From: Lytechinus pictus
Taxonomy: Eukaryota
Length of the DNA stretch: 64,000 bases
Assembly: GCF_037042905.1 (NCBI RefSeq)
Contig: NC_087254.1
Coordinates: forward strand, 3,720,001-3,784,000
Reading direction: 5' to 3'
In this document: in pieces, positions 15,631-64,000 of the stretch
Position numbering within the stretch: the stretch's first letter is position 1
Layout: the number at the start of each line of letters is the position of its first letter
Position numbers and translations under genes: made by a program
Notes under the pieces: model-generated
The model's input: the letters and a program-made list of their open reading frames with translations, nothing else
The model's database searches: none
What the model was told of the DNA's origin: nothing

Positions 15631-15670
<40 letters not shown>

Positions 15671-30074: not shown

Positions 30075-33000
30075 AACTATTTTAATCCACATTTTCCCCG
30101 ATCGGCGGCTAAAAATAACTGGAATAAAGGCTGAAATTTCAGTGCATCTTAACTTTTTTTTTTCTTACGAACAATAATGTCATAAAGCATACTATGTACA
30201 CAAATAATGCGCGCGACATGTGCGAGCCGAAATTTGTAATAGGCCTTAACTGACATGAAGGCCAATTAAGGACTGTTAGCAGCGGCTCATAAGCAAGAAA
30301 CGGGAGCTGAAAGGTTTTTTTTTATATTCTGACCTGAAAATTTGTCATTCTTAGCACTAATCATAATCAGGATGGTTAGTGCTATAGACGTGAGCGACCA
30401 TAATTAAGATGGTTAATGCCAATCAATAGGCGTGAGCGCTAAGCGCGAGATAAAAACATTGATATTCCGGCCTTAAAACTGGACAGTTTGAGCACATTTT
30501 ATAATGGATTATAAAGATTGGGAATATGAGCGCGAACTGAAAATTTTGGCGAATAACAGGGGCCGTGGAACGGTTTTCAAAGTGGGGTGGGGGGGGGGGC
30601 TGACCATGCAAAAACACAGTCCTATGATCATTTTTCATTTTGTACACGGTTTTGAAAAAAAATGAGGGGGGTTGGACCCCCCCCCTGAATTAGACCTAAA
30701 ACGGGTCATTTAGGCAGCTTCTGTAATTCTTAACAGGATAAGTATCTGATTCAATAATATGTAACAATTTTTTTTATTCCGATTTGAAAAATTGACAGTT
30801 AATTAATGACGTTTTTAATACAGAACAATATATATATATAATAAATACTTTTTAAACATCATTTTTTACTTCTTTTTTATTTATCAATTAAGTAATTTGC
30901 GTTTTTTTTTTTTTTTTTTGGGGGGGGGGTTGTTGGCAAACAAGGATCCCCCCGTCTGAAATAAGCTCTTATTTTAATTACCACTTTACCCAATCTGACT
31001 CAATAACAGCATTTCAAATTTGACACAATTTATGCAATATATCAACTTCATTCCTCTCCCATCTTGCAACTGCCCCCCCCCCCAAAAAAAAAAAAAATAT
31101 ATATATAATTGAAAAAAAAAAACTTATAACTTTCTGTGTGATTTGTCACATGAGTAAAAACGGCAACGAGCAAATGGCCTCTATTTACTATCGCCCTTTC
31201 TCTTTCTCTCTTGACTTTCTTCCTTCTTTCTTTTGAGCTCATCCTCTTCTTCAGATCATTTTCTACATTTGCAAATGTTACCTAATTGCATTCATTTGGT
31301 GTTTTTTTGGTTGCTTCTCTTCATCCCTCTTTTTTTCCTTTCATTTGGTATACTTCACACATTTCTCTCTCTCTCTCTTCCTATTCACCCTATCTTTTAA
31401 TGATATCATTTCAATGATAACACTTGCAAACAGTTTTTTTTTACTTTTTCGAGTGTAAAAAATCAAAAATCTTTTTCTTCTTTAATTAGAATCGTGAAAC
31501 AATACCTTTAAAATCCACAAGTGAAGTGACAATATTTCTTCCCTCTCTTTCCGTATAATTACAACAACTAGAAAACAGATACACATCTACAATCACAAAA
31601 CAAACATCACTGTCCACCATGGCGTCTGAACTCCATTATTATATGGTTCCATACCTTAACTAATCTCAACACATACCTTCATATCAAAAGCGGTGTTTAA
31701 AATTGTAAGCATGTTGTTTAAGCCTGTCCCTGTATTCACTGTTGTGAAAAGTTTTACAAGTTGTTTAAGATTTTTTTAACAATTATTAAAAAAAAATAAA
31801 CTTCTTGTTAGAGTGACAGGCATCGACAATATGCTTATTCTGTTTTACTGTGTATAACTTCACTTCTTAACTCACAGACAATATCCATAATTTGTGTGTT
31901 TCATAATATGAGCTGGCAAGTTGGGCCCAAATTGTGCCGTCACGCATAAGCGTTAATCCGGATTGGTCGACCACTTTGTACTCAACACCATGCAATACTC
32001 ACTGTGTTTCTCTACAATAACACTGGTGTTAATTAAACACCAGCCTGGTGTCTCTATTGGAAAACACAAGAGAGGTGTTGAAACATCACCAGACTGGTGT
32101 TAGGCTAACACCAGATAGGCATTTAAGCAACAGTCAGTGTTAAAACAATATCGCTTTGATTCTCATCTGGTGATCTTTCAACACCTCCCCGGTGTTTTCC
32201 GATTTAGATACTACGTTGGTATTAAATAAACACCTGTAGTTTTGTAGTGCATGTGATTTAAAACCTTGGCTTATCGCCAGGTTTCCTAGAATCCCGCTGC
32301 TAGTTCAACTGATTAACACTTATTTTGTCCCTGCCCTTGGAATTCATTGACCAGTGAAATATCAATTTCATTTTTCAATTCTTACACTCGGTCCGTTATC
32401 TTGCATGTCATTAGTGGTCAACCCGTAAACGTTCCAAGGCATGTATTATGAAGCGCACAAATTGCAAGGCAGTCCAACCCCATTTTCATTTCATGAAGAC
32501 GACATACACTATTAACTTATTGTGCATCAATAAATGGAAACATAAATGAATATTTTATGATCTTCTTTAAATGATGGGAAAAATTATGCGTGTTGCCTGT
32601 AAGTCTTCATAATATTTTATAGAAGGAATTAGATTTAAACAACAGATCCAATTGGCATCAATAGATATATGTGTAGGTATTGAAACAATTCTCATAAAAA
32701 TGAATGGAATTCTAGAAGAGCATTTATACATTTACAATGAAATTTGCTGTATGAGAAAATTAACTGGAATAGGTCTCACTCCTAATATACTTTTATTCCT
32801 CCAAGTGAATTCATGGCATTACATGTCGATGTGAGGTATAAAACTTACACTTCAATAAATTACATAAACTCTGTTTGAATGCACCTAAAACAAGATTCCA
32901 AACAGAAAGTAAAGATAAACCAAACATTGTTTATCAGACATGTATATTCCCAATTCATTATAATAAGAATGGAAATAATTAGATATCCACCTTCATATTT

Positions 33001-33989
33001 TGGCAAATTCTGAGGCGTTGCTGCAAAAGTAGAAGGATTAGCATGTTTCCCCTTCATTGATGCACAAATAAGACATCCATGTCATTACCAATAAAATTGA
33101 AAGTACATGTTCTACATGCTATGCATTACAACAACATGTCTTAATATATGAAACACAAACAGTATACCTAACCTAGCTACATCAACTTAGTATTGCTGTA
33201 TTGGTTATCAACTTATAGGAAAATTCAGTATTTAAATATAAACACAAAACTGAACACAAATCTTCAACATATAACTCTGGGACACAAATACTAAACACAG
33301 AGCACATAAATACGTGTAGCTTGTACAAGCCCGCATACAAGTGTTGTGTGTTGCTAGGTGCATTGAACAATCCGTTTGTGGTAATTACCATGATGGTAAC
33401 ATTGATCAGCCAAAATAATTAATATTTAGGATGAATTTACCACACATCACATCATACTGTAACCACTGACAGTAGCTATTATCATTCTATATGGTATTTT
33501 TGATACTGTTGTAACGACGGTCCCTATTTCATTTCTCCATGCCGCACCAAGCCTGCTATTATTGAAATAAAAGGTTTGGCATGTTATAAATAATTCATTC
33601 TAAAATTCAGCATAAAGCAAAGAAATATGAACATGATTCAGTAGTTTGACATTGTTTACTTATTAGATATCACATATGACATTTAATTCATTGTATAAGC
33701 ATAGTTTGGGTCAAATGACTTGTAGTGACAATGTTTAATACACCTTAGTTCTTAGGAAAGATGGGAGTTGTAGTGTGTAGAATACTGTGTAAAAACATTA
33801 TTTTTATGATGAGTATTGGATTCTTCAATAAGTTTTGTCTTTTGTGATATGAAGCCTACAAGTGCATCTCTCTGCAGTTAATCCAAATTTATTTAAAACG
33901 CACTTGAAATGTATTCATGGTGTATTAATCCCTGACTTTCAATCTGTTGAATTATTATTCATGAAAGAAAACATATTAAAATACTATGT

Positions 33990-34620
33990 TCATTGACCAA
34001 AAATAACTTTTGACCTTGATGTGACCTAAGACTTGTGCCAAACAATCACTGATACTGATTACCCTTATGTGTATGTTTCATGCAACAGATCCATAATCAA
34101 TCTTGATCATGTGATCAGAAACTCGCACAGGATGTTCAGGGATACTTGATTGCTCTTATGTCCTAATTTCATGAACTAGATCCATAAAATTAGTTATGAC
34201 AATTCAATAATTACCTACGTAGACACTAAATGACATTTGACCTTGGTCATGTGACCCGAAACTCAGACAGGATTTCTAGTGATACACCATTACCCTACAT
34301 GTATGTCCAGGTTTCATTAACTACATACATAAAAATTTAAAGTCATGACATTCCAAACAGTTAACCTTGGTTACGATTTTGATATTGGTCTCTTTTAAAT
34401 GACTCTAAATGACAGTTGTCATGTGACCTGAAACTCAGGCAGGTTGTTCAGTAATACTTGATCACCCTTATGCCCAAGTTTCATGAACTAGGTCCATATG
34501 CTTTCTAAGTTATGATGACATTTCAAAAACTTAACCTTAGGTTAAGAATCAATGTTGACGCCGCCACTGTCGGAAAAGCGACGCCTATAGTCTCGCTCTG
34601 CTACACAGGCGAGACAAAAA
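33990..34620 (+). mobile_element. Helentron/DINE-1-like non-autonomous element with a TGACC-repeat core
   Basis: Degenerate tandem units; 3' hairpin GTCTCGC...GCGAGAC followed by an A-run. Confidence 0.6.
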
Positions 34621-37600
34621 AGGGTTACCATCATCTTACAGCTATAAAGTCAAGTTTTTTTTTATGAACACTCTCTTATCCTATTTCTGAATAAATTACA
34701 TGAATTCATTCAAAAATAAATTCCTTGTATATTCAATCATGTTTGATCACAAGCTTCAAATTAACTGAACATATATGGCTATCATGATAAATTACCAAGG
34801 AGGGGGGGGGGGGCAAATCAAGAGGGTTTTTTGTCCACCTACATGTAGATGTATAATTGGAAATATACTTTGAAGCAATATTGCAGATTCTAAATGAAAA
34901 GCGCCACCAACATGCCTAACTTCAAAGCTTATTAGCTAATACCTCAATCATCAAGATAAAAACCACAAAATCAACTCAAAGCTAAGAATAAGACAAAAAT
35001 GATTTTAATTTAATGATTTTAATTTAATTTTTACATAACCCATATACAGTTTGAACTGTGACTACATGTAGCTATCCAGATTTAATACTTTATATCAATA
35101 AAATGATCTCGTTTCGTATCTTTTACAGTTCCCCACCTGAAGTTTTAAAAGACATGTACATAATATAATTTGAGTAATGAGGTAACTTGACTTGGCTAAA
35201 TAGAAACATGATCTAGCATTGATGTAACCAGGGCCCGGTAACACAAACATTAGCAATTAATTGCTAAATGAAATGGCCTATCAAGATTGCAGAGTGTGCA
35301 TTTTGCTCTGTAGACCAATTAGGAACCAATTTTTAAATTAGCGATTTATAGCAAACCTTTGTGTTACTGGGCCCAGATGTGAAAAAAGCTTTGGTTAACG
35401 CAGAAAAATTCATATCTGGGCCGTCTCCCAAAGAAGTGGGTTAAATCTATTGTAACTCGTTTCTTCGCCAATTTTACCATTATCATAATGATCATTCCAT
35501 GTTACTGTTGTATATATATATTGGATGATTTTATGATTGAAATGAATAAATTAAGATCGTTGTTGTATGCACACATTGTTCAACACACTGACGAGGATCC
35601 AAACAGAATTGCTCTTTACATTTGCAATCCATTGCAAACCTTTGTGAAACTTGGATATAATCTGTATACATGTACATTCAAATACTTAATTTACACTTGT
35701 ATAAGTTACCACTTCTACTGCTTTCTACCAAATGGTTAACATGAAGAAGGAAAACGAATGATATTTCCTTGCGAAGAGAAGAACTAAGTTTGTACATTAT
35801 ACAAAAACGATAATTTTTTTTAATAATATCATTTGCTTTCTGCGTGTTCATTAATGAAACATTAACATACCTAACAGGAGCTACTAAAGGTTTGTGATGT
35901 GGGTGGCCTTTATATTACAATGTGCAATGGAGGAGATATTAGTTTTGGCAGTAAATCTTAGTGTATATTAATTATGTGCACATGTTCAGTTAGATTACAT
36001 AAATTACTACATAAAAAACAACATACTTAAGCAAATTTGACAAGTTTACCAAGGGTCGCCCTATAGAAATGTAGCACATGCTGTTATTTATTTGACAAAT
36101 GACTGAATCCATAATTAACCCAATCATTTAGTGATTTCAAACTTTTGAAATTATGCAAATACCAACACATTTTTATGATCATTTGATTAGTATAGAGAAT
36201 ATGAAGAGAGAGTATGGAAGAGATGAGTATGAAATTTACGTGTGTGTTAGATCTTAAAAGACAAATATCATTCAGGTGGGCGTGTCATACAGCTGCTCGT
36301 AAGATTAGAGCGACGTTAACGACAGCTGAATTCAATACAAGGACATGGTATCTACATGTATTCCACCAAATGGAAACATGTTCTATAATAAATACCAAAT
36401 AAGTTTGAACACAATGACACTCAATTTCAATATCTATTATTTCATTCAGTACTCCTGTATTTTCCTCACTACAAAAGACACTAATTTTTCACAATTACGA
36501 CCAATATACATTGCTCTTTACAGATTTACATATAGGAAGCAAATATTTTTAAATCAAAATAAGACTTGGTCAACACATACTTATTACCCCAAATCTTAAA
36601 CATGTACACACACTTATACGTATTATGAATTTCATGTAATATAAAATCACTATCGTTGTAATATTAAGAAATCTATACAAATTTAATAGATGTTTAATTT
36701 CCTTCCAAAGTAAAATAAACGATAGTAGGTCATTGAAAATCAAACACGGCATTTTTAAATGATTATTGATCTACATATATGGAGACGTTAGATATAAAAT
36801 GGCATAAATGGTGCTTCTTGCCACATATACCAACATCAACAATCGTGAACCTCATCTGAAGCAAAAGTTTGCTCTTCACATACCTGTCATTTTAAAATTC
36901 ATTATCCAAATTTCAGCTGTTGTTTTCATATTTCATTCCTAACCATGCTGTGACATGCCAGATGCTCCAAAAACAATACCTTAATCATGATTCATTCATA
37001 CCATGTTACATCTCCTCCTAATGTATCTAAAAAAAGCAAAACACTATTTAAACATTAATATAATGAAAGAAAGAATGCTGTTGAATTCAATTGTCATGAC
37101 AATTAAATGAAAAGGAAAACATCAGAAACCACATCTTACGATGCGGACTGGAAACTCCTAAACTAGACCAGTGATGAAGCAAACACGTTTTGTTTCATTA
37201 CCTCATACATGGCAGCTTACATGTGGAGTTCCACAGGGCTCTTAGGGTGGACCCATCCTGGTTAAGTACAATAATATTCTGCTATGAGCCCCACACTTCG
37301 TCTACTTCATAGTGTATACCAGCCGGAAAAATAAATTGAAAGAGTATACTCATCACGAAATTTGTAAATACTAGTCTTTATGAGTTCAACATTGAACTAT
37401 AGAATTGAATATGTCCAAGAACATGTACTAGCACTTACGAGGCCTACACGTTGCTTACACGGGCAACCTAGTGTGTACATATACACATATCATTGTATGA
37501 GTTTAACATATATATTGTGACAGTAAACTGATCAAAATGTAAAGATGAAACATGTGAATGGAAGGAACGCCTGTAATATTTCGAGGATTGACAAAATAGG

Positions 37601-38332
37601 CATATGATTATATAAATGTGGGTGATACAGCAGGGTAATAAGCAACATAAAATTCTGAGACATGTTGTGATACACAAGGACATTATTGTAACGGTATAAT
37701 CATTTCAATCACAAATGGGCACAATTCTAGAGATAAAAGGATAGAATATGGACTCCATCCATCCATTTACTGTACAATACATTATTGCATACGTACTATA
37801 TCTCTCCATTGACATATTTACATTCGGAGCTATACAGAGACTTTGTGTCCAGCGCCCTGGAACATAAACATTAGTGATTGATTTTAGGGCTGATTCCTAC
37901 GATTGATCATACACAAAAGTCAATGTAACCAATCATAGATATCGTCATCACGATCAAACACTAACCTCTATGTTACATGGCTGGTAACAATCTATTCAAC
38001 ATCTTCCATAGATTTTTAAATACACTAAGAAAAATGAATAGAAATTTTCAGAAGAAAACATAAAATATCTAACTCTATGTTCCTATTTCTAGGAAAACAC
38101 ACTAGATCAATAGTCGGTTTATTCACAGGGAAATAAAGGTTTGGCATTACTCATGATTGTAGCGTCTTGAATAAGGTATGTCATACAATGACACATCACA
38201 ACAACGTGACAATTAATAATATATGTAAACTTCATTATTCTACTTCATTTGAGATAATCAATGTTTGTATGACACAGCCGATTCAAGCCCGCTTTCCCGT
38301 CCATAGTATATTCTTTTTGTGAATTTATAGAG

Positions 38333-38755
38333 ACAATGCCCGACCTCATCACCAGGTTCGAGTAGCTACAATGCCAACCTCATCACCAGGCTGAAGGTAC
38401 TGCTATCCTCATCCTCATCACCAGGATAAGCAACTTAAAACACAACCTCATCACCCGGTGATGCAAACACAATCTTCAACCATATTCAGCAGGCTGAAGG
38501 AACTACTATCCTCAACTTCATCACCAGGTTAAAGCAAGTACAATCACCAACCTTGTCACCATGCATGCTGAAGGAACTACAACCCCAACCTCATCACCAG
38601 GTTGAAGCCACTAAAATGCTTAACCTAATCACCAGGTTGGAGCAACTACAGATGGCAACCTCATCACCAGGTTGAAATGAAATACACCTTCAATCTTATG
38701 ACCAGGTTGAAACAAGTACAATACTCAACCTCATCACCAGGCTGAAGAACTACAA
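38333..38755. repeat. ~35-bp minisatellite (core AACCTCATCACCAGG), ~12 units, just downstream of the PDPK1 stop
   Basis: Repeated core visible directly. Confidence 0.85.
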
Positions 38756-38958
38756 TTACATCACATATAATCTCTCTCCAAATCAGCAACCTCAACATAC
38801 CTTTCATGTTAGGTTGAATCATAAATAGCATTTTATGATAAGAAGTATACAATACCATTGCAAACATCACACATAACCATCGATGGACAAAGCGAAGGGG
38901 GCTGATCCTCCCACTGGTCCACAGAATGGAGCAGGTAGCGGAGGATGATGGCGATAGA

Positions 38959-39060
38959 TTAAATAGACTTTTGGTACGTATGTCTGTACATCTCTTTGAT
39001 TGCTTGACACCACTCAACTGCATCACTCTCTGGGTCAATAAGGTAGTATGTCCGATTTGG
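38959..39060 (-). CDS. PDPK1: PDPK1 last coding exon
   Basis: [33 protein letters not shown]. Confidence 0.95.
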   Translation of the reverse strand, partial: PNRTYYLIDPESDAVEWCQAIKEMYRHTYQKSI

Positions 39061-42000
39061 CTGGAAAAAGAAAAAATACACACAAATTCATGTTATATTT
39101 TGTCAACACAGTCCATATGTCAATAAGGTTGCACATACCTTTTGGCAGATGAGTAAAATAGATTATAGAAATGTCATATTCCGTTGACACAATCTATAGT
39201 TTAACTTTGAGAATATAGATATATATGACAGATTCGTATGACAGAACCTCTGGGTCCATTAATAAGCATGTCCACTTATTTTTCATGTATGTCAAATAAT
39301 TGCTTAAGTTGAGAGATTAAAATTGTACATGTTATATGTTTTTTCAAACAATCTCTCTCGACTAGTATTGTGCATATGTGTCAAATTTGACAAGGGAGAA
39401 AAGATCACTGAAATATAAATGTCACATTTCATTTTGACAGTATCATTTATTGAACTTGTACACTTTATCCATCTTAAAAAAATGCACCTTATAAAAAGGA
39501 AAAAAAGGGTCCCATCCCATTCCATCTCAAAGAAAAATATGGAAGGAGTATTACAACCAATTTTAAAACTCTGGGATGTACAAATCAGAGTAGAATTTGT
39601 GCAATACATTTTTCCATCGTCAACTCACATGACATAAATGATCATTTTGCAGCAACATTTCAGAGCACATATCAGGAAAACCTTTTTATACTTTGTACAG
39701 TAACAACGAAGGATGTGACTGTTTACTTACTGTATGCACAAAATATGTCTTGAAATTCTTAGCTTCTACTTTCAGTTGCGGTGACCTGAAAAGGATGGAT
39801 AACCAGATCATATGAGAATTACTTCCACAATAATTTTTGCAGATTTTTTTTTAAATTGAACTGAATACCAGCCCAGAAACATTGCATTAATGGCTCCGAA
39901 TAGAGTGATGCACTCATATTTCTTTTATGAGCATCTTTATAATATCCACATTTTCATGTGCAATATCAATTTTTATACATATTTTAACATTTTTATACAA
40001 TAAATAAAATAAACCCCCCCCCCGAAAAAAAAAATCCTGAAATGTATTTCTTGTCAATCAGTTGGAGCAGGGTTACTGGTTTCAATTGATAAACCTCATG
40101 CATTAGGTTAAATAAAAAAAAATGTACACAAAGGCTTAAAAGCATGCAACTGAAAAATAAATACTCATGTAGCATTAAATGGAAATGGTTTTTCACACTA
40201 AAATCATAAACGTTGCATTCGTGGCAATAAGAATGAGGGTGTTGTAGCCTAGTGGTTAAAACTCTTGTCTTTCAATCTGAGGGACATGGGTTCGATTCCC
40301 AGCCATGGAGTGTTTTCCTTCAGCAAAAAATTCACCCACATTGTGCTGCACTCAGCACAGGTGAGGTTAATGGGAACCGGCAGGAAGCAATTCCTCAAAA
40401 AGATGTGAGCACCGGAACAGGTAGACTAGCGTAGCCAAGTTAATATAGGAGCGCCTTGAGCACCTAGCAAGGTGGATATGTGCGCTATGCAAATCCGATA
40501 GAATAATAATAATAGTTCCATTTATATAGCACTTATTACACTTTTTTCTAAGCGCTTTATATTGCAATTATTATTACCCCGGTCATCGGATCCTGACATG
40601 CCCACACACAATGTATGCACTTTCTCCACTCCCTGGGGAGCATTCCAACAAGAGTTCCAAGACTCAATTGCTAGGCATAATACAGGTACATAGGCTTTCG
40701 CATTCTACAGGGTACCCATTTAACACCTGGGTGCAGAGTGGCAAAGTGTGGATTAACGCCTTGCCAAAGGACGCTAGGCCGTGGTGGGATTCTAACACAC
40801 GTCCCTCTGATTGCAAGGCGAGAGTCAGAACCGGTACACCACAAGGCTTCCATAATATTATTATTTAATCAGGAACAATCGGAAACCCTGCTTTATTTGT
40901 TAAAAATTGAAGATTAGTTTATCTCACCATGGTATTTCTCCCTTGAGGACCATATTTTCAGGATCTACATAATACAAGTGGGGGCCTTCCGTTAGTAGTA
41001 ACATTCTCCTCCTGGCAAACAAACCCTGCCGTGTGCAAATGAACAAAATTCATAAAATAATCAAATCAAATACGCATCCATATATACCGCTTTACACGTC
41101 AATCGTGAAGAGTAACGATTTTTTAAACACCAAACTTTATTATGATCATAGTGTGGTTCGTATTGCGCGCACACCATCCAAAGACACTCATGGCACTAGC
41201 TCAGCAACAGTTCTTTGATATATGAACAAGCTACAAATATAAACACATTCAATTACCCTAAAATCCTAAGAAATGACACATTGCCATAAATAAAAGCATG
41301 AGTTTGTATATCAAATTTGTGTCACTTGTCAAAACTGTATCCCGACGGGGTCTGGTACCCTACTTGCTACCCCGTATATAGTATATGATTCGATCATTTG
41401 TCACAAAAAGATTTTTAAAACGAAATGGATATCAACTTTAATACTGCATTAGCACAGAAGCGAATGCATTTCATAGGTTAATACAGCATGGTAGCCTTTT
41501 AAAAAGTCCTGGTGATCTCACACAACTATGTTGTTGTTGTTGTTATTTTGAATAGGCAAACTAGTCAGTTTTGACTATTGTTGCCTTGTAAAAATGCTTT
41601 CCTTTTTGTTTTCACAACTAGAAAATTTTATTCGTCTTCCAGTGATAATGATGAGGTACGATACCATACATGTTAATGTTTAGAAATGGAAAATTCTACT
41701 CTGATTGCGCGATAGCCAATTTTTTTTTTCCTAAGATGCTGTCCAGGCAAGGGCGGCATGCTGTCGCCTAGGGCTCCTAGTAGGGGCCATGGGCGAAGCC
41801 CCGGCAAGGTTCAGAGGGCCGAAAAGTGATTACACTTCTCTGCCAACACAGAGAAGTGTATTACAATTGCTTTGTGAAACTACCCCTACGTCTGATACCA
41901 ACCTTCCTCTTATCCACCCAGCCATTCTTGAGTATGAGATTGCCTTCCACAAACCGGTGCCATTTGTTCTCCTTCCGTTGCCTCTCCAGTCTCTGCTTGC

Positions 42001-42142
42001 GTTCTCCCGGGGTAAAATCTACAACATATTTGTTATCCCTGGTAGGACTATGGGCGCGGTCGTGCGTCTCGATCCTCTTCAGGTACTCACTTAAGCTGGT
42101 AGGGTTCAACTCCAAGTCAAAATCATCAACCTATGTGGAATG

Positions 42143-42178
<36 letters not shown>

Positions 42179-45100
42179 TAATCAGTTTTTAAACAGCACA
42201 CAGTACAATGATGTCTCTTCCTGCTTTGAAATAGAAAATGAATCAGAAGGTTGAAAAAGAAAAAAAAACAATCATAGTAATTGAGCCTTTCAATAATCAT
42301 AAAAAGATCTGAGACTAGGAACTACATGTACTTACGATGCATATTGAGCAAGGAAAAGTTAAAGCCATCATCTGTAAAAGCTAAGACTTTACACATGTTT
42401 ATTTTCAAGAGGTACATTGAGGAAGTTTTTCTGTAGTTGAAATGATCTTTACCTGTATAATATCGTGGAAGCATGGGGGGGGGGGTAAACAACTTTTTGG
42501 ATTGAAACAAAGATGTTTTATCAGATGGTAGTCATTGAGAAGCTGTTGTAAATAAAAGAGGGCCAATCAATCCTAGCATTTGTAAAAGAAACTGATTTCC
42601 GAGATAATATTTAATTCATTTTATGGATACATGTATATAGCATGAAAGAAGAATGACGTTACTGAAAAGGTGCCGATTTGCATTTTGATACATTGAATTT
42701 GTTGTTTTATCATGTTGCCAATTTACAGTGTGTAATGATTACCTCAAGTTAAACAGCTTTAATTATGGAACGGCACCACATACAGTACTGGAAATGGTAT
42801 CAAGTTTTTTCAGTATATTTTTCTCTTACTGACCTAGGGTTCCCAGCTTTTCAAAAAAACAAAATTTTCCCTGATGAACTTTAAAAATTTCCCTGATAAT
42901 TATTTAAACCCATTCCCAGTTGTGCATGTTTTCTAAGTTGTTGCAGTGAATTACACATATTTTCAGTATAAAAACAATAATGCAAATCTAATTGGTACCA
43001 CCATAACCAGTCATTCAATGGAAGTTGTTTTGATATGCTACAAAATATAACAGAGTCAGACTGACTACCCTGCTTTCGACTTTTGGGCCGATCAAAATTC
43101 CCTGATTTTTCCCTCGTTTGAGGAATTTCCCCCTGATTTAAGGTATTTTTTTAAATCAAATACCCTGATTTTTTCCTGACTGGAAAAACTCATTTTAGAA
43201 ATAATTTTCCCTGATTTCCCTGATGGGCTGGGCCTGTAACCAATACTCCATCTGTAATTATTAGCATTCAGGATATTGATAAACTGCAAAGTGTCTCCTA
43301 TTAAGGTCTAAAGACACTTTACCTCTATAGCTCATTTTCTGAATTTTTGTTTCATTTAAACTCTGGTCTATAAAAGTTATGGTTTGATTATGGAAAGCCA
43401 ATTGTGCAAGTACAAGTTATATTTCCCAGCTCATTGACAATCAAATAATTTTTGTTTCTGTTTGTAACTTGTAATTTGTAACTGACTTGGAACAGTTTAC
43501 TGAAATAGTAATCTTCATCAATAAAACATGAGGGAAGAGGCAAGACAAGAACAGGTAACATATGAAAATATGCTTTTAAAAAAAAATTTGGCTTCCCATA
43601 ATTTTTTACAGAGTTAGACCATGGGCCTGAGTTAACCAGTGCCGGCCACACAGAAATGTTTGTTAGCCTAAACAGAGCGCTAAAAGTAAGCCCAGTCACA
43701 TCTTTTGGATTGTGAAGTCAAAACATTTATTTAAATGTGTAAGTATTAAATGCATTGTTGTAACATCCGGCATCGCTGGTCTATTGCCGGCTGTAACAGG
43801 GCCTCTGTTAGCGCATTGTTTATAGCGGTAACAACGTTTCTGTGTGGTCAGTACAGGATTTCAGAATACGGGCCTATGGTCAGGCGAGGGCGCTGTGATA
43901 CTCACATAGTACTCGCTATGGATCTCTTCCCCATCGACCACTGTGCATGGTTTGAGTACAGGTGCCTTCTGCTCGTGGAGATTGTCCCAGTCCACGTCAT
44001 CTAAGAATGGATGTGCCTTCAGGGCAGGGTACCCGCCACACTCGTCACAGCCTAATCTTTTGAGCGGATCAATAACCTACAACAGCGAGGCAAACAAAGA
44101 ATTCTCAACTAACTACCGGTACATTTAGCAGGGGTAAAATAAAATTGGGGGCTGGGGCCATCTGACTCCAAGATGCCTCAAAATGCCTCCTCAGCCCTGG
44201 AAAACGAACAAAAAAAAAAAACCCTAAAATTTTTGTAGGGTTCAATGTAAACTGGAATACAATAATGCAAATCAAGATAGTGGCAATCTCAGTCAGTATC
44301 ACCCCCCCCCCCAAAAAAATATTTCCTTGTCAATAATATAGCCTTTGAAATAACAACCATGAATATATATACTCAGTGATTATAATAATAATAATAACTT
44401 CATATCCATCCAGGTTAGTCACTTCTGTTCTGAAAACTGTTCTCCCGGCGGGCCCTGCTTTACCTGATAATGTTATTATTACCCCAGCTTTAGCGAGGCT
44501 ACCTTAATCGGGCGCTCGAGCATTCAAGGAATTTCTTCCTACCAGGTACCCATTCACCTCACCTGGGTCAAGTGCAGCACAATGTGGGTAAATTTCTTGA
44601 AAGAAAACATGCCATGGCTTGGATTCGAAGCAACCAATATGCATTTATATATAATGAACAAATTTAGACCTTGGAACCAACTTGCATATATAATGAGCTG
44701 TGACCTTTGACCTGCAGACTCCGAATTCGAAATTAGCCAGTATTTTGGTGTCATCTACCTACTCACCCAAATCTTTTTAAATCTGTTGAATATTTCATAA
44801 ATTATCATGCAGAAACCAACTCGCATATTTAATGAGCTGTGACCTTTGACCTGCAGACTCCGAATTTGAACTTAGTCTGTATTTTGGTGTCATCTAGCTA
44901 CACAACCAAATTTTTAAAAATCTGTTGAACATTTCATAAGTTATCATGCGGAAACCAACTCGCATATTTAATGAGCTGTGACCTTTGACCTGTGGACTCC
45001 GATTTTGAGCTTCCCCTGTATTTTGGTGTCATCTACCTACACACCAATTTTTTTTTTTAATCTGTTGAATATTTCATTTCATAAGTTATCATGCGGAAAC

Positions 45101-51100: not shown

Positions 51101-53517
51101 CTTCAAGTGGAGAAGTGAAAATAAATGTAGAAAGTTTATCACCTTGCTCTAAATGGAGGTAGCCCTGCTTGTAGTTGATACACTATGCAGCCAAGAGCCC
51201 AGAGGTCCGAGCTAAATAGAGGATGGTATAGAGACATGGTTCCAGAAAGTCAATAATATTACTAACCAAACTTGACAAATGACCAAAAGTTGCATTTAAA
51301 AAAAGATATTTTAAGACTTTCAATTATGAATTTAAATAATCAAATAAATAATATTAACATAATGTAATAACATTGAATAAATTACTGTAAAAATGTTTTT
51401 ATAAAAAATAAATACACATATTTTGTGCCAATCTGCAATGAAAACTGAAAATAACATAGCCATATAATATTTGACAATCTTTACCATGTACATGTTTGAG
51501 CAACATCAAGTATAGGCCTACTGTATACCTATATATGTTTATTAGTTCCATCAAGAAAATGGTCTCTCCCCCTCTCTCATTCTCTCTCTCTCTCTCCACC
51601 TGAGAAAAAATTGAAAAGACTGATGCAAGTGTACATGTAAAAAAAAATGTTCTAAATGACATTATGAACAAGATCTTGAACCAATAATTACCTTTTCGTT
51701 GCAGATTTTTCAGTGAGTAGCTCCGGGGACACATATTGAGCAGTACCAACAAATGAATTTGCACGAGCTACAAAAGAAAACATTAAATGTTATTTATAAT
51801 ATAATATCTGGCTCAATCAACACGATCCACAAATTCAAAACAAGAACAGATAAAACAATCAACAGGAAATTATACACATGTAATAGAGGATATGATCAAG
51901 AGAATCAGGTGCGTTTCTATTTTGATAGTTGGATTTAATTCCTGATTTTGCTTTCCTCATTCTACTTGGGACTTCATTTTATGTTTAGACGTAAATCCAA
52001 CATCCCACTTCAAATGAAATACCGGTAAGCTAGATTAAGGTGGCATATCACAATACTTTTCTCAGTGCCTTTCCAATCAAAGAAATAGTCTATACAAGGA
52101 CCCGTGGAGGATCCAGGATTTTGAGATGGGACGGGGGGGGGGCTCAATAAGAATCTCATAGACTTAATAGCTACATGTACATGTGCATATTGATGTGTTA
52201 CATGTATGTTCAATGGGCAATTCTCAAAATATACAGAGGGCATGCGCCCCTTGCATCCTGCCTGGATCTGCTACTGGCTAACACAAACAATTATCTTAGA
52301 AATTATGTATGGCACTTTATTATATTTCATTCAATATTTTATAAATGATTGATTTCTGTTCCTTTCAAGAATATTTCGGTACTGTACAGACTGTTAAAAG
52401 TAAAAACGAAATTAATGCACAAAGTTTCTAAAAAAGTATTAATAACAAAATCAAATCATATTCCACTTTTACTTATCGATACCCGATGGTAATGTGTTAG
52501 GATTAAAGGTATTATTTAACTTTGTGAGCAGCCGATTTAAAAAAATTTCAAACCAAGATGAAACATGTGTACAAGTACTTGTATTAGAACCAAAAATCCC
52601 TGAAAACAACCATTATTGAGAATGAAAAGCTAAAAATACAAGGCAAAACCCAATTTTGTAATTAGGCGTCTTAAAGACGCTTAAATAGAACACATAAGTG
52701 TATGGGATGAAATTAAAATGGTGTTTCCGGTCACTTTATATTTCACTTTTTTAATCACTAAATAATGATTTCCGGACGCAATTTTTTCTGGGCTACATTT
52801 TTGTAACATATCACACACACAGGTGACAAGTGTGACCTTCTAGCTCAGATTTTTTAAAAGTCAAATCAATGTTAGCCAATCACTTTAAAAGGGTGAAGAC
52901 TACCCTTTACCCCCCCCCCCTCCCTTGAGCCTTTTACTTTTCTACCATGCTAACTTCCAACTTCCAAACGTAGAGGGGGAGGGGGAGGGGGTCATCTTCG
53001 TATCGTCACAATGGATGCTTGGAACATAGCACAATAAAGGGTCATGAGTAGTGCGTAAAATTGCTTCATGAAATACCTGCTTGGGTATACCAAATAGTGT
53101 CATATATATATCAGGGCCCCATCTTACAAAGAGTTACGATTGATCCAATCAATCATAACTCTATGAAAATCCAACAGTGTCATAATTTTTTGTACAGGAA
53201 ATTTGCAAAATGTCCTCTGTAAACAAAGGAGAACACACTAAATCGTCAAGAAATCATTAGATTTATGGATATACATTCATATCTATAATTTTTTTTGAAC
53301 AAACATGCATTTTATATGTTGACTTTGCTGGCTTTCCATAGTTGCGATTGATCGGATCAATTGCAACTCTTTGTAAGACGGGCCCCAGGAATGAAACACA
53401 AGTAACTTACATGACCCATCCTTCTTATCATCAGTCCCTATAATCTTGGCTGTTCCAAAGTCTGTGATTTGTATGTGCATCTTCTCATTGAGAAGAATAT
53501 TTTCCGGTTTCAGGTCT
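38959..53517 (-). CDS. PDPK1: 3-phosphoinositide-dependent protein kinase 1 (PDK1), 3' part; upstream exons lie beyond the window end
   Basis: Exons 53517-53411 ([18 protein letters not shown]), 51767-51692 ([17 protein letters not shown]), 51211-51143 ([21 protein letters not shown]), 45541-45445 ([17 protein letters not shown]), 44076-43906 ([18 protein letters not shown]), 42130-41903 ([19 protein letters not shown]), 41025-40928 ([30 protein letters not shown]), 39785-39731 ([12 protein letters not shown]), 39060-38959 ([10 protein letters not shown]...stop); all GT-AG and in phase. Confidence 0.97.
39731..39785 (-). CDS. PDPK1: PDPK1 exon, PH domain
   Basis: [18 protein letters not shown]. 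Confidence 0.95.
40235..40513 (+). mobile_element. tRNA-derived SINE, same family as 5035-5312
   Basis: A box TAGCCTAGTGG, B box GGTTCGATTCCC, shared body. Confidence 0.85.
40518..40851 (-). mobile_element. tRNA-derived SINE (second family), tail-to-tail with the previous copy
   Basis: Head GGAAGCCTTGTGGTGTACCGG...GTTAGAATCCC; CCCAGGTG..AAATGGGTACC core. Confidence 0.75.
40928..41025 (-). CDS. PDPK1: PDPK1 exon, PH domain
   Basis: [33 protein letters not shown]. Confidence 0.96.
41903..42130 (-). CDS. PDPK1: PDPK1 exon, linker and start of PH domain
   Basis: [30 protein letters not shown]. Confidence 0.93.
42836..43230. mobile_element. MITE with TTTCCCTGA repeats
   Basis: AGGGTTCCC terminus; clustered TTCCCTGA motifs at both ends. 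Confidence 0.55.
43906..44076 (-). CDS. PDPK1: PDPK1 exon
   Basis: [39 protein letters not shown]. Confidence 0.94.
44660..45329 (+). mobile_element. Helentron-associated (HINE/DINE-1-like) element, 4 x ~140-bp tandem core
   Basis: Tandem units, GGAC microsatellite, 3' hairpin ATGCCCCC...GGGGGCAT followed by an A-run. Confidence 0.75.
45445..45541 (-). CDS. PDPK1: PDPK1 exon
   Basis: [32 protein letters not shown]. Confidence 0.96.
45686..45868 (+). mobile_element. 7SL-RNA-headed SINE with Meta-like body and (CA)n tail
   Basis: Head GCTGGGCGTTGTGGCGTGCGCCTGTAATCCAAGCTA; 10-bp TSD ACACCTATTT at 45676-45685 and 45869-45878. Confidence 0.8.
45884..46105. mobile_element. Short MITE
   Basis: GGGTGACTTCAAGTTCAGTGTTG...CAACACCGGACTTGAAATCACCC. 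Confidence 0.65.
46425..46553. repeat. (ACT/ACC/GCT)n microsatellite abutting the gap at 46554-46683
   Basis: Seen directly. Confidence 0.9.
48475..49399. mobile_element. hAT-like non-autonomous element
   Basis: AGGGCTCAAATTAA...TTAATTTGAGCCCTG TIRs; TSD not preserved. Confidence 0.6.
49877..50710. repeat. Element with clustered GTGCCC(T)n motifs, interrupted by a nested MITE (~50133-50292, GGGGAG...CTCCCC)
   Basis: Motif array and TIRs seen directly. Confidence 0.6.
51143..51211 (-). CDS. PDPK1: PDPK1 exon
   Basis: [22 protein letters not shown]. Confidence 0.96.
51692..51767 (-). CDS. PDPK1: PDPK1 exon, activation loop
   Basis: [24 protein letters not shown]. Confidence 0.96.
52507..52884. 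mobile_element. Kolobok-like MITE
   Basis: TTAA flanks; imperfect AG...TAAC TIRs. Confidence 0.55.
53114..53385. mobile_element. Harbinger-like MITE
   Basis: GGGCCCCATCTTACAAAGAGTT...AACTCTTTGTAAGACGGGCCC; CAG flanks. Confidence 0.75.
53411..53517 (-). CDS. PDPK1: PDPK1 exon, catalytic loop/DFG
   Basis: [24 protein letters not shown]. Confidence 0.95.
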
Positions 53518-54100
53518 CTGTTGGACACACATTGGAAGAAAACAAAGTATTATTAAAACACACATGTATGCCCATTAATTTTCATCCGATGCTGGTCTTT
53601 GAACTCGGCATCTCTGTTTAAAAATAAACTGACAGTAGAAGTATGATAATGATTACGATAACTAGGAGCTTTTCATGAAGTTTTGTCAGTGATTTTTCAC
53701 CGACTGATGTAAAAGCTACCGGGAATCCTTGAGTTCAATTGGTCGAGCACAAACTAGCCAGTGAGAGTCACTGAAACTTTGACAGAACTTTACATGAAAC
53801 CATGGAGCTATTTGTTGATAGCGCCATGATGAAACTATCTCCGGAGGATGTTTCCATGAAGATCGAAAGAAGCGGAAAAAGTAGAAATCCCTATGGCTGC
53901 AAAGTAAGATTTATTGTGCAATAAAAGTTTTAACACTGTGGTTGATTAAAAGCAACTCCAAACCGGGGAGGGGCAGGAGATTGAAGGAAGTAGAATTGAT
54001 TTCAACACATACATATATAAAGGCAAGAAAGGTGTGATCAATGCGTAAATGTTATGTACATCAATCATACTATGTACATGTAGATGAACATGCACATAAA

Positions 54101-55045: not shown

Positions 55046-55857
55046 GAAGAGCTCACTTGTAAAAGGGATTATGTCCATTTTTCATCTAATTTGATTTTTT
55101 GGTCTCAATGTATAGATTTTTAGTAGCTCTATAAGATGATACAAAAGAAAATTTGAAATTCCTATTAAAAAGTGAACTAAAATGGCAAAGAAAAATAATC
55201 TTTTTTTCAAAAAGGGTTAGGTCCATTTCAGTTTGGTTGCAAAAGGGGTTAGGTCCACATTTTTTTAAAAATATGAAGACAGGTAGATTTCTTTTATACC
55301 CAATTTTATAATTTCATGGTAGGTTATCATGAAAATTTAGTTTCATATAAGAATATTGCAATATGGGAGAATAACAAAAATGATGTTCTTGGAGTGGACC
55401 TACATGTAACCCCTTTTTCAGCTTCTGAAGAGCTGATTTGTCAAAAGGGGTTTGGTCCATTTTTCATAAATTTTATTGTTTTCTGTCTCAAAACCTCTAA
55501 ATTTGTAGTCGCTTTGATGATACCAAAGACAATTTGAAATTCACATGAAAACGTGAATAAAAGTGGCAAAGAAAAATCACTTTTTTAATCAAAAGAGATT
55601 GGATTAATTTCAGTTTGCTTGCAAAAGGGGTTACATGTACTGTAGGTCCACAATGATAATTAAAAAATATATATATAGAGAAAAAAATTGAAGACAGGTA
55701 GATTTCTTTTATACCCAATTTTATGTTCACATGATAGGGTAGTCCACCATGGCAATTTAGTTTCTCATAAGAATATTGCAATAAGTGAGAATAAAAAACA
55801 TGGTTTTTCTCAGAATGGTCCAAAGTGGACCTAACCCCTTTTGCAACCAAACTCTTC
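55046..55857. mobile_element. Two tandem copies of a GAAGAG-terminal (Sola-like) MITE
   Basis: GAAGAG...CTCTTC termini; the second unit begins at 55427. Confidence 0.65.
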
Positions 55858-56495
55858 ATTACATAGAGAAGATGAATAGGAAGATGGAAATAAAAACATG
55901 GATTTGAAAACTGAGACAAAACAACCTGTACAATAAAGCTAAAAAGAGGAAGTTTGGAAGTGAGAAATAAATACCACTGTGATCGATGTAGCAAACCAGG
56001 AAAAATGAAGAGAATGGGATTATTGGTTTTACTGGATGTTTACATACATGTACATGTAGATAATATTCTGATATATTAAGATTAGTCTCCAGGCACAGAC
56101 CCTTGGTTCTCACAATTCGCTTAGTGCATAAAGCAGAGTCTGAAGAAGTGAGACTAGATTCACTTTATTGTACTGTGGCTGGCTCTACCATTTGAAAGAG
56201 ACAGAGTTTGGCATCTAAGTACATAGTATGAATTACCGGTACTCCAGACTATCATAAGACATGGTAGAATTGATTAAAGCGTCAAATATGAGTCTGTTCT
56301 TGCAGACTATTATGTAGTATAAGATTCCTGTTGCATACATGTAGGTCTACATGTATGTACTTTAATTGGTCTGACCAAGTTGGGAATTGCCCCATCCCAA
56401 CCCCCACCCACCCATCCCACCCCTGACCCCCCCCCTTTTTTAAACAATCACTGCTCAATCCTGGATACACCCCAGTGTGTACCCAGGAGAAGGGT

Positions 56496-57076
56496 CCCGG
56501 GGGGGGGGGGGGGGGGCACTTACATTGAGTCGTGGATACCATGCGCGACCAACAAAGCATAAAAAGGATGTAAAAAGGTAAAAAGGATGTATTATTCAAG
56601 ATAGGGCACGTTACGTACGTAACGTAATAAGGGTGTCAAAAACACTAAAATAATGAAAAAAGGGTATCTATTTCGCTAGGAAAGCTACGTGTTTAGGGTC
56701 AAATTTGCGAGGGTATAAACGATCAAGACTAAAATGTTTTATAAAGAATGTACTTTTTGCCCCAGGAGTCAACACTACTACATGTACATGTTTAGTGTAC
56801 GATTTGGGCTGTACTAAACCCAATGATGTAGGTAGAGGTAAAACCGACGACCGACGTCCTTGATTGAAATATCGCTGTACTTGTTTAGGGGTTCAATTCA
56901 GGGAATACTTGCCAATTGTATCATTTTGTTTCCAATACTTGTTAAGGGTAGGGTTTCACACGCCAATAAGGGGTGCATTTTCAGAATATCGAAAATATGT
57001 GTTTAGGGTGCTTTTTGAGATCTCATGGTCGCACATGGTATCCACCCGTGAATGGAAGTGCCCCCCCCCCCCCCGG
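56496..57076. mobile_element. CCCGG(G)n-terminal MITE, 8-bp TSD
   Basis: TSD AGAAGGGT/AGAAGGGC; inverted sibling at 59807-60400. Confidence 0.85.
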
Positions 57077-58119: not shown

Positions 58120-59207
58120 AAAACGAGACGTTCTTCTCTCTTCTCTCAAAGGCGAGCATATAATACACCCGCCTGTAACATGGAAAATGGAGTTACTGGT
58201 CAAGTAAGAAACGTGGAAGGTGGCAACTTCACCTTTGACCTTCTGACCTCAAAATCAAAAGAATTGCTGGGATCTACAGATGCTAGTATCAAACATGTAC
58301 ACACCAAATTATGAGCCTGGGTTAAGTTCAACTAAAGTTATCGCATAATTGAAGGAATTGAAAAGGGTAGATGAAAACATGTCACTGTGATCGTGACCTT
58401 TGACCTTTTGACCTCAAAATCAATAGGCTTCCTGAGATCCATGCTAGTATCATAAAAACCAAATTATATGAGCCTGGGTTAAGTTAAACTAAAATTATCA
58501 CGTTTACAAGGACTTCAGAAGGGTAAGATGAAAACAGGTCACTGTGACCTTCACCTTTGACCTTTTGGCCTCATAATCAATAGGCTTCCTGGGATCCATG
58601 ATAATATCATACACGTCAAATTATATGAGCCTCGGTTAATTTAAACTGAAGTTATCGCCTTTACAAAGACTGCACAAGGGTACATGTAAGATGAAAACAT
58701 GTCACTGTGACCTTGACCTTTGATCTTTTGACTTCAAAATCGCTTGACTTCCTGGGATCCATGCTACTATCATACACACCACATTATATGAGCCTAGGTT
58801 AAGTTAAACCGAGGTTATCGGGTTTAACAAGGACTGCAGAAGGTTAAGATGAAAACATGTCATTGTGACCTTGACCTTGGACTTCGAAATCGTTAGGCTT
58901 CCTGGGATCCATACTAGTATCACACACACCAAATTATATGAGCCTAGGTTAAGATAAACTGAATATCGCGTTTATAAGGACTGCAGCAGGGTAACCGGTA
59001 AGATGAAAACATGTCAGTGTAACCTTGACCTTTGGACTTCAAAATCAATAGGCATCCTGGGATCCATGCTAGTATCATACACACCAAATTATGAGCCTAG
59101 GTTAAAGTCAAACTGAAGTTCGCGTTTACAAGGAAAAGTTAACGGACGGACAGACAGACGGACATACGGACGGATGGACACTGTGGTCCCGTCTAGGACG
59201 GGACAAA
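58120..59207 (+). mobile_element. Helentron-associated (HINE-like) element, ~6 x ~160-bp tandem core
   Basis: TGACCTTGACCTTTGACC units, GGAC microsatellite, 3' hairpin GTCCCGTC..GACGGGAC followed by AAA. Confidence 0.78.
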
Positions 59208-59806
59208 TCAGATGAGTAACAGCAATTTAAGGTTTCAGAGAATTTTCAAAATTTCAGAGTTTCAGTGCTATACGCCGAAGGAATATCTCCTTCCTGCACA
59301 CCCATCTTCTACTCTGTTTTGCGAGCTAAAGATAGGTAATGTGGCTAATTTATTTTTTGCTTTCAAATCTGATCTGACCATGACAGGCATTCATACATGT
59401 ACCAAAGTTGGCATTCTATACCACTCAATGAATGCCCTTTTCTGTTCTCATTTTTTTAATAAGACGTTTTTAGCTTCTGCACTTCGCGTGGGAAAAGGGA
59501 TTATTTTGAATGTTGGACGCACATAATTTCTTTCGAAAACAATTTTTCTTTTGAAATCACAGCAAGTCAATTGAATTGAGCCAATAAGGGAACTAGAGAC
59601 GCAAGAGATGTCTTCTTTTGATTTGAATTTGATGAGACACCAAACACTTTACGCTGAGCCAGGGAGGGGGGAACCTGCCCTCTCCCCCTAGGGATCAGAG
59701 CGCGCTTTGCGCACTCCGAGTGTTGGCACATTTCGCATGCACTTACCGCCCCCTCCAAAATTAATTCCTGGTTACGCTGTCATCATTAGACATCGTATGT
59801 ATTTAC

Positions 59807-60400
59807 CCCGGGGGGGGGGGGGGGGGCACTTCCATTGACGAGTGGATACCATGCGCGACCACGGGGTCTCGGTAAACACCCTAAACACGTATTTTCCATG
59901 TTCTGAAAATGCACCCCTTAACAAGTATTGGCGTCTGAAACCCTACCCTTAACAAGTATTTGAAACAAAACTATACTCTTGGCAAGTATTCCCTGAAATG
60001 AACCCCTAAACAAGTATACAGCGATATTTTATCATGTTCATTGTTGTGTCACGGGTCCGTCGGTCGTCGGTTTTACCTAATTTACACACCATTTGGCCGT
60101 GTAGTACGGCCCCACCTTCCTCACCTCGCGCAAATCGGGACTCTAAACACGTAGTGTTGGGGCAAAAAGGACATCCTTTTTTTCATTTTAATTTTGTTTT
60201 ATCATTTCCGCAAATTTGACCCTAAACACGTACATGTAGCTTTCCTAGCGAAATAGATACCCTTTTTTCATTATTTTTGTGTTTTTGACACCCTTATCAC
60301 GTTACATACGTAACGTGCCCTATCTTGAAAAAGACATCCTTTTTACGTGTTTTTTGGTCGCGCATGGTATCCACTCGTCAATGTAAGTGGCCCCCCCGGG
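59807..60400. mobile_element. CCCGGG-terminal MITE, 8-bp TSD
   Basis: Perfect TSD GTATTTAC. Confidence 0.88.
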
Positions 60401-60660
60401 GTATTTACACGGCAAAGTTAGAGTGGTACACTAGCATTACCAAATATCACTTCATGGCTGCTTTTCAACATAAATTAAATTACAAAATATCAACACGATG
60501 CAGGGTTAATCACCCCTTGGGAGTCTCCCACTAACCCTGCTGGCTGAAGTTAGCATGCTGAGTACAGCATTGCCATTCATTCATCATGTAGGGTAGCTTC
60601 AAAGATTACATTATACATATATGTAGAACCCACTGAACAAGTGAAAGAGTCTTATACTAA

Positions 60661-61268
60661 AGGGGTACTCTGGGCTGAAATTAATTACATCGGAATAAAA
60701 AGAGTAAAATTAACAGAGCAAAAATGCTGAAAATTTCATCAAAATCTGATAATAATGTTGCTATTGAATTTTAAAGTTTCATAGTAATATTTTGTGAAAA
60801 CAGTTGTAAGCATGCCATCATGAATATTGATTTGGTAGGCTGATGATGTCATGTCCCCACTTTAATTTTTCATGTTTTTACATGAAATCACAATTATTTT
60901 ATGTTTTTCATGCCTGTTTGTATGATGTGCCTCCCTTGCAACAAAAATGTATGTTGCAGCAATAAATACCTTGTGCATTATTAAAAACAGTTATCAACCC
61001 AATTATTTTCATTCTTGGTGAACAAAATTTGAATATTAAACATGAGTTCATATACTGTAATAAAATACAAAATAATAAGTGGGGATGTGACATCATCAGC
61101 TTGCTCATTGCATATTAATTAGACTAGAACAGGCATATAACTTTTTTCCTGAAATAATCAAAGCTTTAGAATGTCATACATGTAACTTTGTTATTCCTTG
61201 TCCGATTTGATGAATTTTTCTTCAATCCTCTAATAAAAATCATGTCATTTTCAGCCTGGAGTACCCCT
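60661..61268. mobile_element. Kolobok-like MITE
   Basis: AGGGGTACTC...GAGTACCCCT; degenerate TTAA flanks. Confidence 0.7.
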
Positions 61269-63708: not shown

Positions 63709-64000
63709 ATATGTAACCAGCCACCCCAAAACCAACGAGCTGTTTGAGATTTTATTGAGCTTGGAAAAAAAACATCTTAAGCTTTAAAATGATCTGCAAT
63801 ATAACTAAATAAAATAGTGTCAAGAAAATACTATTTTCAACTTTAAATTTTGTATAAAGTACGAGGAAGAATGGCTCTTTCAAATCTATAAGCTAATTTT
63901 AAAATGTTTGCTTTTTGAAGACAAAAATTACAATTTTGGCTATTTTCAACAGAGAATCTTCCTTGGCGACTTTTATCAGTTTTGGGGTGGCTGATCATAT
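63709..64000. mobile_element. Short TIR element
   Basis: ATATGTAACCAGCCACCCCAAA...TTTGGGGTGGCTGATCATAT. Confidence 0.6.

Follow-up and report, generated by a model that had tools for sequence, protein, structure and literature searches.

We report that a 64,000-bp stretch of the Lytechinus pictus genome (contig NC_087254.1, positions 3,720,001 to 3,784,000; in the following the window, with coordinates counted from its first letter) carries a dense field of a single eight-letter palindrome, TACATGTA, and that this field starts no more than a few hundred bases away from where the transcript of PDPK1, a broadly used gene, has its 3' end. The word is a six-letter insertion at TA, not the long form from which a plain TA is derived by deletion. 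We consider it likely, with a probability of roughly 0.65, that the sites (here called scars) are excision footprints of a Tc1-type transposon that have built up over long periods, exclusively in this germline-transcribed, methylated gene body.

The window holds 40 copies of TACATGTA, compared with 1.79 ± 1.39 in 100 dinucleotide-preserving shuffles (largest count 7), i.e. the excess persists when composition is corrected for. Three copies are located in 1-32000 and 37 in 33000-64000 (binomial p = 8.5e-9 for 3/40), which bears out an earlier reading of the same DNA, made from its letters alone (the sequence-only reading), where about three copies had been seen by eye in the first 32 kb and more than 30 across PDPK1. 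Under a first-order Markov model 0.8 and 1.0 copies are expected in the first and second half, respectively, and the halves are alike in GC content (0.367 and 0.362) as well as in the number of TA sites (2574 and 2536). The core ACATGT is present 74 times in the second half and 6 times in the first, and TACATGTA is the sole large outlier, whether it is ranked with all TA-N4-TA words or with all other palindromic 8-mers. Once chance is subtracted the contrast between field and non-field DNA is approximately 16-fold. The field takes in introns and the 3' untranslated region (UTR) of PDPK1, while its exons have no scars.

The polarity of the change was determined from sister repeat copies, for which all self-alignments of the window that cross a site were used. 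Sister copies exist for six of the 40 sites, five of them informative; the sisters read plain TA at all five, none of them has the long form, and at three of the five there are at least two sisters, which sets the polarity as insertion. It follows that TACATGTA arises as a +6 insertion at TA. The sites at 58681, 55401, 60231 and 34296, for which the sequence-only reading had claimed such sisters, all show TA in them, and for 61177 the self-alignment gave no sister copy within the window. A tally of indels between repeat copies in the window, another check that this reading had proposed, gave the same picture: all 6-bp indels in the second half are of the TACATGTA type, compared with 0/4 in the first half. 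The stacked site at 55632 joins a two-nucleotide and a three-nucleotide form at one single TA. Two of the repeats used here may form a composite unit: the copies of an approximately 570-bp repeat (56503-57074 and 59813-60397) are inverted and 2.7 kb apart, have about 17 G in a row at the start and about 14 C in a row at the end, and each is bounded by inverted ends.

Minor relatives of the main word are also in excess, and this only in the second half. TACAGTA and TACTGTA together number 15 with 4.5 expected (p = 7e-5; first half 5 and 3.7), TACATA and TATGTA together 47 with 28 expected (first half 30 and 24), and TACCGGTA is present three times with 0.16 expected (p = 6e-4; first half 1 and 0.21). 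Thus, of the companion words listed in the sequence-only reading, TACCGGTA holds up and TACAGTA/TACTGTA do so in part, being threefold in excess rather than "many", while TAGGCCTA drops out with one copy per half (0.28 expected in the second half and 0.24 in the first).

In a modest sample of 53 flanks, from which scar-derived flanks of stacked sites had been removed, A is present at position -3 in 51% compared with 32% at other TAs in the field (p = 0.004), while position -1 is poor in T. This resembles the target preference of Sleeping Beauty, ATATATAT (PMC7077980). Scars are also found on top of each other: 14 of 80 flanks end in ATG, ATGTACAT occurs 14 times with 1.2 expected, and of 35 scar loci 30 are single units; there are five doubles and one near-triple of the hexamer, and the longest run is about three units. 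Each scar brings the favoured A or T to the TAs at its two ends, which would explain the stacking. Beyond stacking, nine gaps between neighbours are shorter than 100 bp (3.6 expected, p = 0.007), and the field is uneven on a 2-kb scale. Two scars (9926-9933 and 42628-42635) lie inside short (TA)n runs. Such runs are about half as frequent inside the field (TATATATA, 7 in the field and 15 outside), and their interruption by scars may be one reading of this lower frequency.

The left edge of the field coincides with the drop in the observed/expected ratio of CpG (CpG o/e), the onset of strand asymmetry and the end of the RNA cover at approximately 33.0 kb. The change point in ACATGT density is at 32800 (2-log-likelihood support 31900-32800) and that in CpG o/e at 30600 (support 27600-32700); CpG o/e falls from 0.72 to 0.51-0.52, while the ratio for GpC is essentially unchanged (0.99 in the field vs 0.93). 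Within the field, the correlation between CpG o/e and the density of scars carries no information on a 2-kb scale. Strand asymmetry is absent in 1-32800 (G/C p = 0.46, A/T p = 0.62), whereas in 32801-54000 the sense strand of PDPK1 has G in excess of C (p = 1e-7) and T in excess of A (p = 2e-4), to which repeats inserted in one orientation could contribute. With low CpG o/e as a proxy for germline methylation and strand asymmetry as a proxy for germline transcription, the PDPK1 unit has the CpG depletion at equal GC of a germline-methylated invertebrate gene body and the sense-strand asymmetry of a germline-transcribed unit; the cytochrome P450 and sialyltransferase genes to the left have neither. 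The P450 gene body has one TACATGTA site in 5 kb, so being genic alone is insufficient for a field. In sea urchins, methylation is found on a subset of the expressed genes (PMC9246332), and from the proxies we infer that the confinement of the scars probably reflects germline chromatin.

As to the gene itself, the stop codon of PDPK1 is at 38962, and the part for approximately the first 195 residues (numbering of the amphioxus orthologue) is beyond 64000, which means that 53.5-64 kb is one long intron. One intron has an assembly gap directly after a (CTA/CTG)n run; the exons on its two sides (51213-51145 and 45552-45442) encode adjacent residues, 257-279 and 277-313 of amphioxus PDPK1, and the gene order is therefore continuous across it. 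All motif counts are independent of this gap and the reading frame is unaffected. For the 3' UTR, strand-specific total-RNA reads (first mate on the plus strand) give 1-10x from 37.0 to approximately 33.0 kb and none in 32.6-33.0 kb, and contigs from RNA runs of two studies contain 0.93-0.97 of the 31-letter words of 31500-39100, where five sites are located. On the minus strand AATAAA is present at 32792 and 33888, and the number of such signals is no greater than expected by chance.

The scars are old. One-mismatch variants of TACATGTA number 53 in the field with 21.8 expected, an excess of about 31, and scars that have mutated once are therefore about equal in number to intact ones; under steady accumulation this share of mismatches corresponds roughly to 0.2-0.4 substitutions per site. 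The first half, with 13 variants and 18.6 expected, has no excess. Decayed copies in the field and none in excess in the first half indicate that the process has been going on for long and that the first half never was part of a field. With about 70 events or more on approximately 2,500 TAs, the rate per TA is very roughly a tenth of the substitution rate per base, and hence no exotic activity is required.

Transposon excision footprints are a textbook phenomenon. For Tc1 and Tc3 of Caenorhabditis elegans, van Luenen, Colloms and Plasterk reportedly found in 1994 that the 5' cuts are made two letters inside the element. Such a two-letter stagger on CA...TG ends would predict TA-CA-TG-TA, although the window has no element of this kind. 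In general, a footprint of the Tc1/mariner superfamily is made up of the 2-4 outermost letters of the element, flanked by TA on both sides (PMC6943129, PMC8151067), and TACAGTA/TACTGTA are the canonical footprints of Sleeping Beauty (PMC6943129). The sea-urchin scars share with the footprints of Tc1-like elements, Sleeping Beauty included, TA as the target, the duplication of TA and presumably the retention of terminal letters of the element after end joining. The seven-letter forms of Sleeping Beauty type are likewise in excess here, one of them stacked on the eight-letter scar at 55632, and CA+TG and C(A/T)G as extra letters would be compatible with ends of the form CAG...CTG, which are typical of Tc1-like elements (PMC6943129). 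The differences are that Sleeping Beauty leaves three letters with one overlap, while the main sea-urchin form has two per end (CA+TG), and that the former footprints are known from assays whereas the scars constitute a fixed genomic record.

We infer that the agent would be a Tc1-family element with 5'-CA(G)...(C)TG-3' ends, which would insert at TA and duplicate it. At excision its transposase would cut the non-transferred strands two letters inward from the element's ends, and end joining would then leave TA-CA-TG-TA, a net gain of six letters that equals TACATGTA; three-letter cuts, or loss on one side, would give the rarer TAC(A/T)GTA and TACATA/TATGTA forms, and as the TAs of a scar would be good targets themselves, scars would stack. 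The confinement could come about in two ways. Integration could be tethered to gene-body chromatin, or insertion could be unbiased and excision far readier in methylated gene bodies, as for Tc1-like elements of the inverted repeat/direct repeat (IR/DR) type; with local reinsertion, an element would in the latter case go on hopping inside the methylated gene body and would come to rest only once it had landed outside. The two fit the data about equally. We hold only tentatively, at somewhat less than even odds, that a sea-urchin Tc1-family transposon is gated by germline gene-body chromatin (5-methylcytosine and/or trimethylated histone H3 lysine 36, H3K36me3), whether at landing or at leaving.

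There are relatives for both routes. Human immunodeficiency virus integrase integrates in gene bodies by way of LEDGF/p75, a reader of H3K36me3, and the pogo-derived protein PogZ binds LEDGF; we know of no LEDGF-like tether for any Tc1/mariner transposase. With a tether to an H3K36me3 reader, integration would be restricted to the bodies of transcribed genes and would cease at the transcript end. On the side of excision, that of Sleeping Beauty, Frog Prince and Minos increases more than 20-fold with CpG methylation (PMC3680223), an effect comparable in magnitude to the approximately 16-fold field contrast seen here. The sequence-only reading had explained the pattern by repeated insertion and excision biased to the body of an expressed gene. 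Its insertion at TA (5/5), its Tc1-type minor forms and its excess confined to the PDPK1 unit stand, but the targeting of insertion is only one route, since easier excision from methylated DNA would give the same pattern (PMC3680223). The choice of repair pathway was also considered as a cause, with homologous repair favoured in H3K36me3 chromatin, and rejected as it predicts fewer scars in gene bodies.

Two other systems are of interest for comparison. A catalogue of DNA-transposon excision sites in rice has 8 tidy sites among 94, most of the others having deletions or filler DNA; it agrees with the present data in that excision sites are a lasting source of small indels which can be read from genome sequence, and differs in that no field structure is reported, while in the sea urchin one tidy form is dominant and confined to a gene body (PMC4423477). 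The internal eliminated sequences of Paramecium are bounded by TA, derived from Tc1/mariner elements and located inside genes, but their somatic excision is precise and leaves no CATG, and they represent a separate phenomenon (PMC3464196). In the searchable literature we found no description of a dense, gene-body-limited field of one footprint, and the literature on the word TACATGTA itself gave only primers and unrelated motifs.

A number of points weigh against this reading of the scars and of their confinement. The end search proposed in the sequence-only reading, which we carried out within the window, came out empty: scanning for Tc1-like pairs of inverted TA|CA..TG|TA ends gave none, an inverted self-BLAST of the window revealed no Tc1-like donor element, there is no transposase among open frames of at least 85 amino acids, and no site in the window has the element still in place. 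(Hits in 2030-4561 were rejected as a donor since they are internal sub-repeats of a foldback array.) Sleeping Beauty integrates near-randomly (PMC8151067), and the effect of methylation on excision was seen on plasmids in human cells, with Tc1 itself unresponsive (PMC3680223); consequently neither route has a direct precedent in an element with a two-letter stagger. Scars as uniform as these would need a very stereotyped repair, compared with the untidy sites in rice. The outer T and A of TACATGTA vary about three times more than its inner letters, which simple decay does not explain and which suggests that some primary products may be imprecise at TA. Furthermore, germline methylation and transcription are judged by sequence proxies, and the data come from one locus with one field edge within the window. 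Finally, the total-RNA runs cover 31001-37000 at 0-6x outside repeats, and at this depth, and with the fragmentary contigs of a relative that is 8-10% divergent, no scar was scored as polymorphic or shared.

Among the other explanations that we weighed, local hopping would mean that one or a few elements near PDPK1 moved over short range, that the overlap with the gene is coincidental and that chromatin is irrelevant. Cut-and-paste elements do reinsert near their donor (PMC7827188), and the clustering below 100 bp and the unevenness on the 2-kb scale described above are what one would expect. However, the published windows of local hopping extend over 100 kb to 15 Mb without sharp edges (PMC7827188), whereas the edge of the field matches three independent changes (CpG o/e, strand asymmetry and RNA cover), and the decayed copies indicate long accumulation rather than a single episode; we regard local hopping alone as unlikely. 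Still less probable in our view is an origin without a transposon, by slippage of a (TACATG)n hexamer or some other sequence-specific insertion at TA. The doubles and the near-triple are in its favour, but most sites hold a single unit where the sisters have only TA, and a plain TA provides no local template for slippage. Long arrays as in a microsatellite are absent, the prevalence of single loci speaks against it as well, the five-letter (CTG/CAG) insertions, the half forms and the different insertion at 58991 are left unexplained, and the preference at -3 suits a transposase.

Even scarring followed by uneven survival, with a first half that is younger or has lost its scars, seems very unlikely. 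The first half is indeed partly young, given a foldback array (1.9-4.7 kb) and a tandem duplication with 98% identity (27.3-29.4 kb), but it also includes introns of the P450 gene and intergenic DNA whose composition is ordinary, TA sites are equally numerous there, and decayed variants are not in excess. Slightly less credible again is that selection has kept the palindrome as a signal in the RNA or DNA of PDPK1, e.g. as a protein-binding site: this would suit a word that is limited to the transcription unit, 3' UTR included, but selection does not produce +6 insertions at TA, the sites are found within decaying repeats and copies resembling miniature inverted-repeat transposable elements, and the near-equal numbers of one-mismatch and intact copies are those of neutral decay. 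We see hardly any room for an artefact of assembly or sequencing. The read depth at the sites is too low for a letter-by-letter check, yet the independent RNA-run contigs from two studies contain nearly all words of the 3' UTR region, an Illumina-based contig of another species has TACATGTA as well, and every insertion is exact and falls at a TA.

That contig, from another echinoid (Logan, SRR28370573, L001:787-799), holds the orthologous PDPK1 exon, 88% identical, and TACATGTACATGT in an intron, the introns being unalignable; it hints that PDPK1 may be scarred in a distant echinoid relative as well. In one contig that spans 36353 the gap total is incompatible with the loss of 6 bp; this evidence is weak. 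A search of a representative library with the PDPK1 exon gave only a fragment of 80 amino acids, located on 1-kb contigs of a more distant echinoid with unalignable introns. Queries with the exon and with an open frame in the 3' UTR added nothing to this, with amphioxus PDPK1 as query the best 120 matches were only chordates and hemichordates, and none of these searches gave the orthologous locus of the sister species Lytechinus variegatus.

A genome where one tidy footprint exceeds one copy per kb and stops where a transcription unit ends is, as far as the searchable literature goes, undescribed. If the restriction is real and general, a Tc1-type element would have a chromatin preference, unlike the near-random Sleeping Beauty, which bears on the choice of integration sites; tethered integration would be new for the Tc1/mariner superfamily. 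The scars would then be a permanent map, in sequence only, of germline-transcribed, methylated DNA over millions of years, such that germline chromatin could be read from DNA in species that lack epigenomic data, and they would represent a distinct and sizeable transposon-driven class of indels in the bodies of housekeeping genes, their 3' UTRs included, with a rate per TA site in such domains that a rough estimate puts at about 5% of the substitution rate per base.

Table 1. Features of the window discussed in the text (strand given as + or -; a point means no strand)
Feature	Position	Strand	Remarks
TACATGTA field	32821..64000	.	1.19 per kb vs 0.09 per kb leftward; continues past right window end
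Field TACATGTA sites, 3' part	34296, 34840, 35063, 35667, 36353, 42323, 42628, 47986, 48069, 48285		exact matches
Field TACATGTA sites, middle	51632, 52172, 52199, 54075, 55401, 55632, 56045, 56051, 56336, 56348, 56779		exact matches
Field TACATGTA sites, 57-61 kb	57640, 57714, 57791, 58681, 59394, 60231, 61177, 61275, 61321, 61469		exact matches
Field TACATGTA sites, right end	61475, 61879, 62474, 62525, 62540, 63126		exact matches; field total 37
TACATGTA outside field	5886, 9926, 18620		three sites in 1..32800
Scar in 3' UTR region	34296..34303	.	in one of three repeat units; both sisters CT-TA-TG
Scar in inverted-repeat motif	55401..55408	.	GGACC-TACATGTA-ACCCC; copy at 55832 reads GGACC-TA-ACCCC
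Stacked scar	55632..55644	.	TA-CATG-TA-CTG-TA, +11 bp (CATGTA + CTGTA); sister GGGGT-TA-GGT
Scar in 157-bp array	58681..58688	.	+6, GGG-TACATGTA-AGATG in one unit; 3-4 others (58355, 58512, 58833) read GGG-TA-AGATG
Other insertion in 157-bp array	58991..58999	.	TAACCGGTA, +7 vs sisters; other unit, TA equivalent to that of 58681
Scar in ~570-bp repeat	60231..60238	.	clean 6-bp gap vs reverse complement of 56686; G-run-ended repeat, inverted copies
Double scar TACATGTACATGTA	56045..56058	.	two overlapping TACATGTA sites
Further doubles and near-doubles	61469-61482, 47981-47993, 52172-52185, 56779-56792	.	
Boundary zone	27600..32800	.	CpG o/e falls, strand asymmetry begins
PDPK1 coding exons	38962..53528	-	tblastn with P0061; Pfam Pkinase and PH_3; kinase C-lobe to PH domain
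PDPK1 exons 1-5 in window	53528-53439, 51768-51694, 51213-51145, 45552-45442, 44076-43909	-	tblastn with P0061
PDPK1 exons 6-9 in window	42004-41885, 41031-40927, 39784-39722, 39075-38962	-	tblastn with P0061
Probable PDPK1 3' UTR	32775..38961	-	end uncertain, ~32.8-33.9 kb
Assembly gap	46554-46683	.	within PDPK1 intron
Control stretch, no field	1..32800	+	holds P450 and sialyltransferase genes
Cytochrome P450 gene	~14.7-19.9 kb	+	Pfam p450
Sialyltransferase gene	26.3-29.4 kb	+	Pfam Glyco_transf_29

Other features of the window are as follows. A second assembly gap (16941-17082) is located within the P450 gene, between frames at 16.4-16.9 kb and 17.08-17.3 kb. The region of the last sialyltransferase exon is tandemly duplicated (27269-27961 and 28607-29350, spacing 1389 bp, approximately 98% identical), resulting in two open frames of 231 and 248 amino acids with the C-terminus of Glyco_transf_29. 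In the scar-free part, 1902-4703 is a foldback-type structure where 7-8 direct 177-bp units face inverted units of the same family, its outer arms being 87% complementary over 199 nucleotides. An Rfam scan of the window gave no match. Tandem repeats of approximately 140-170 bp with the motif TGACCTTTGACCT are present in 34000-34600, and a related array in 58235-59140. In two RNA runs depleted of ribosomal RNA these repeats have a strand-specific depth of 1,000-6,000x, compared with 1-10x for the surrounding 3' UTR, and many of their reads have joints that go back, as is typical of tandem arrays at other places in the genome; the TGACCTTTGACCT repeat looks like a satellite that is highly and asymmetrically transcribed.

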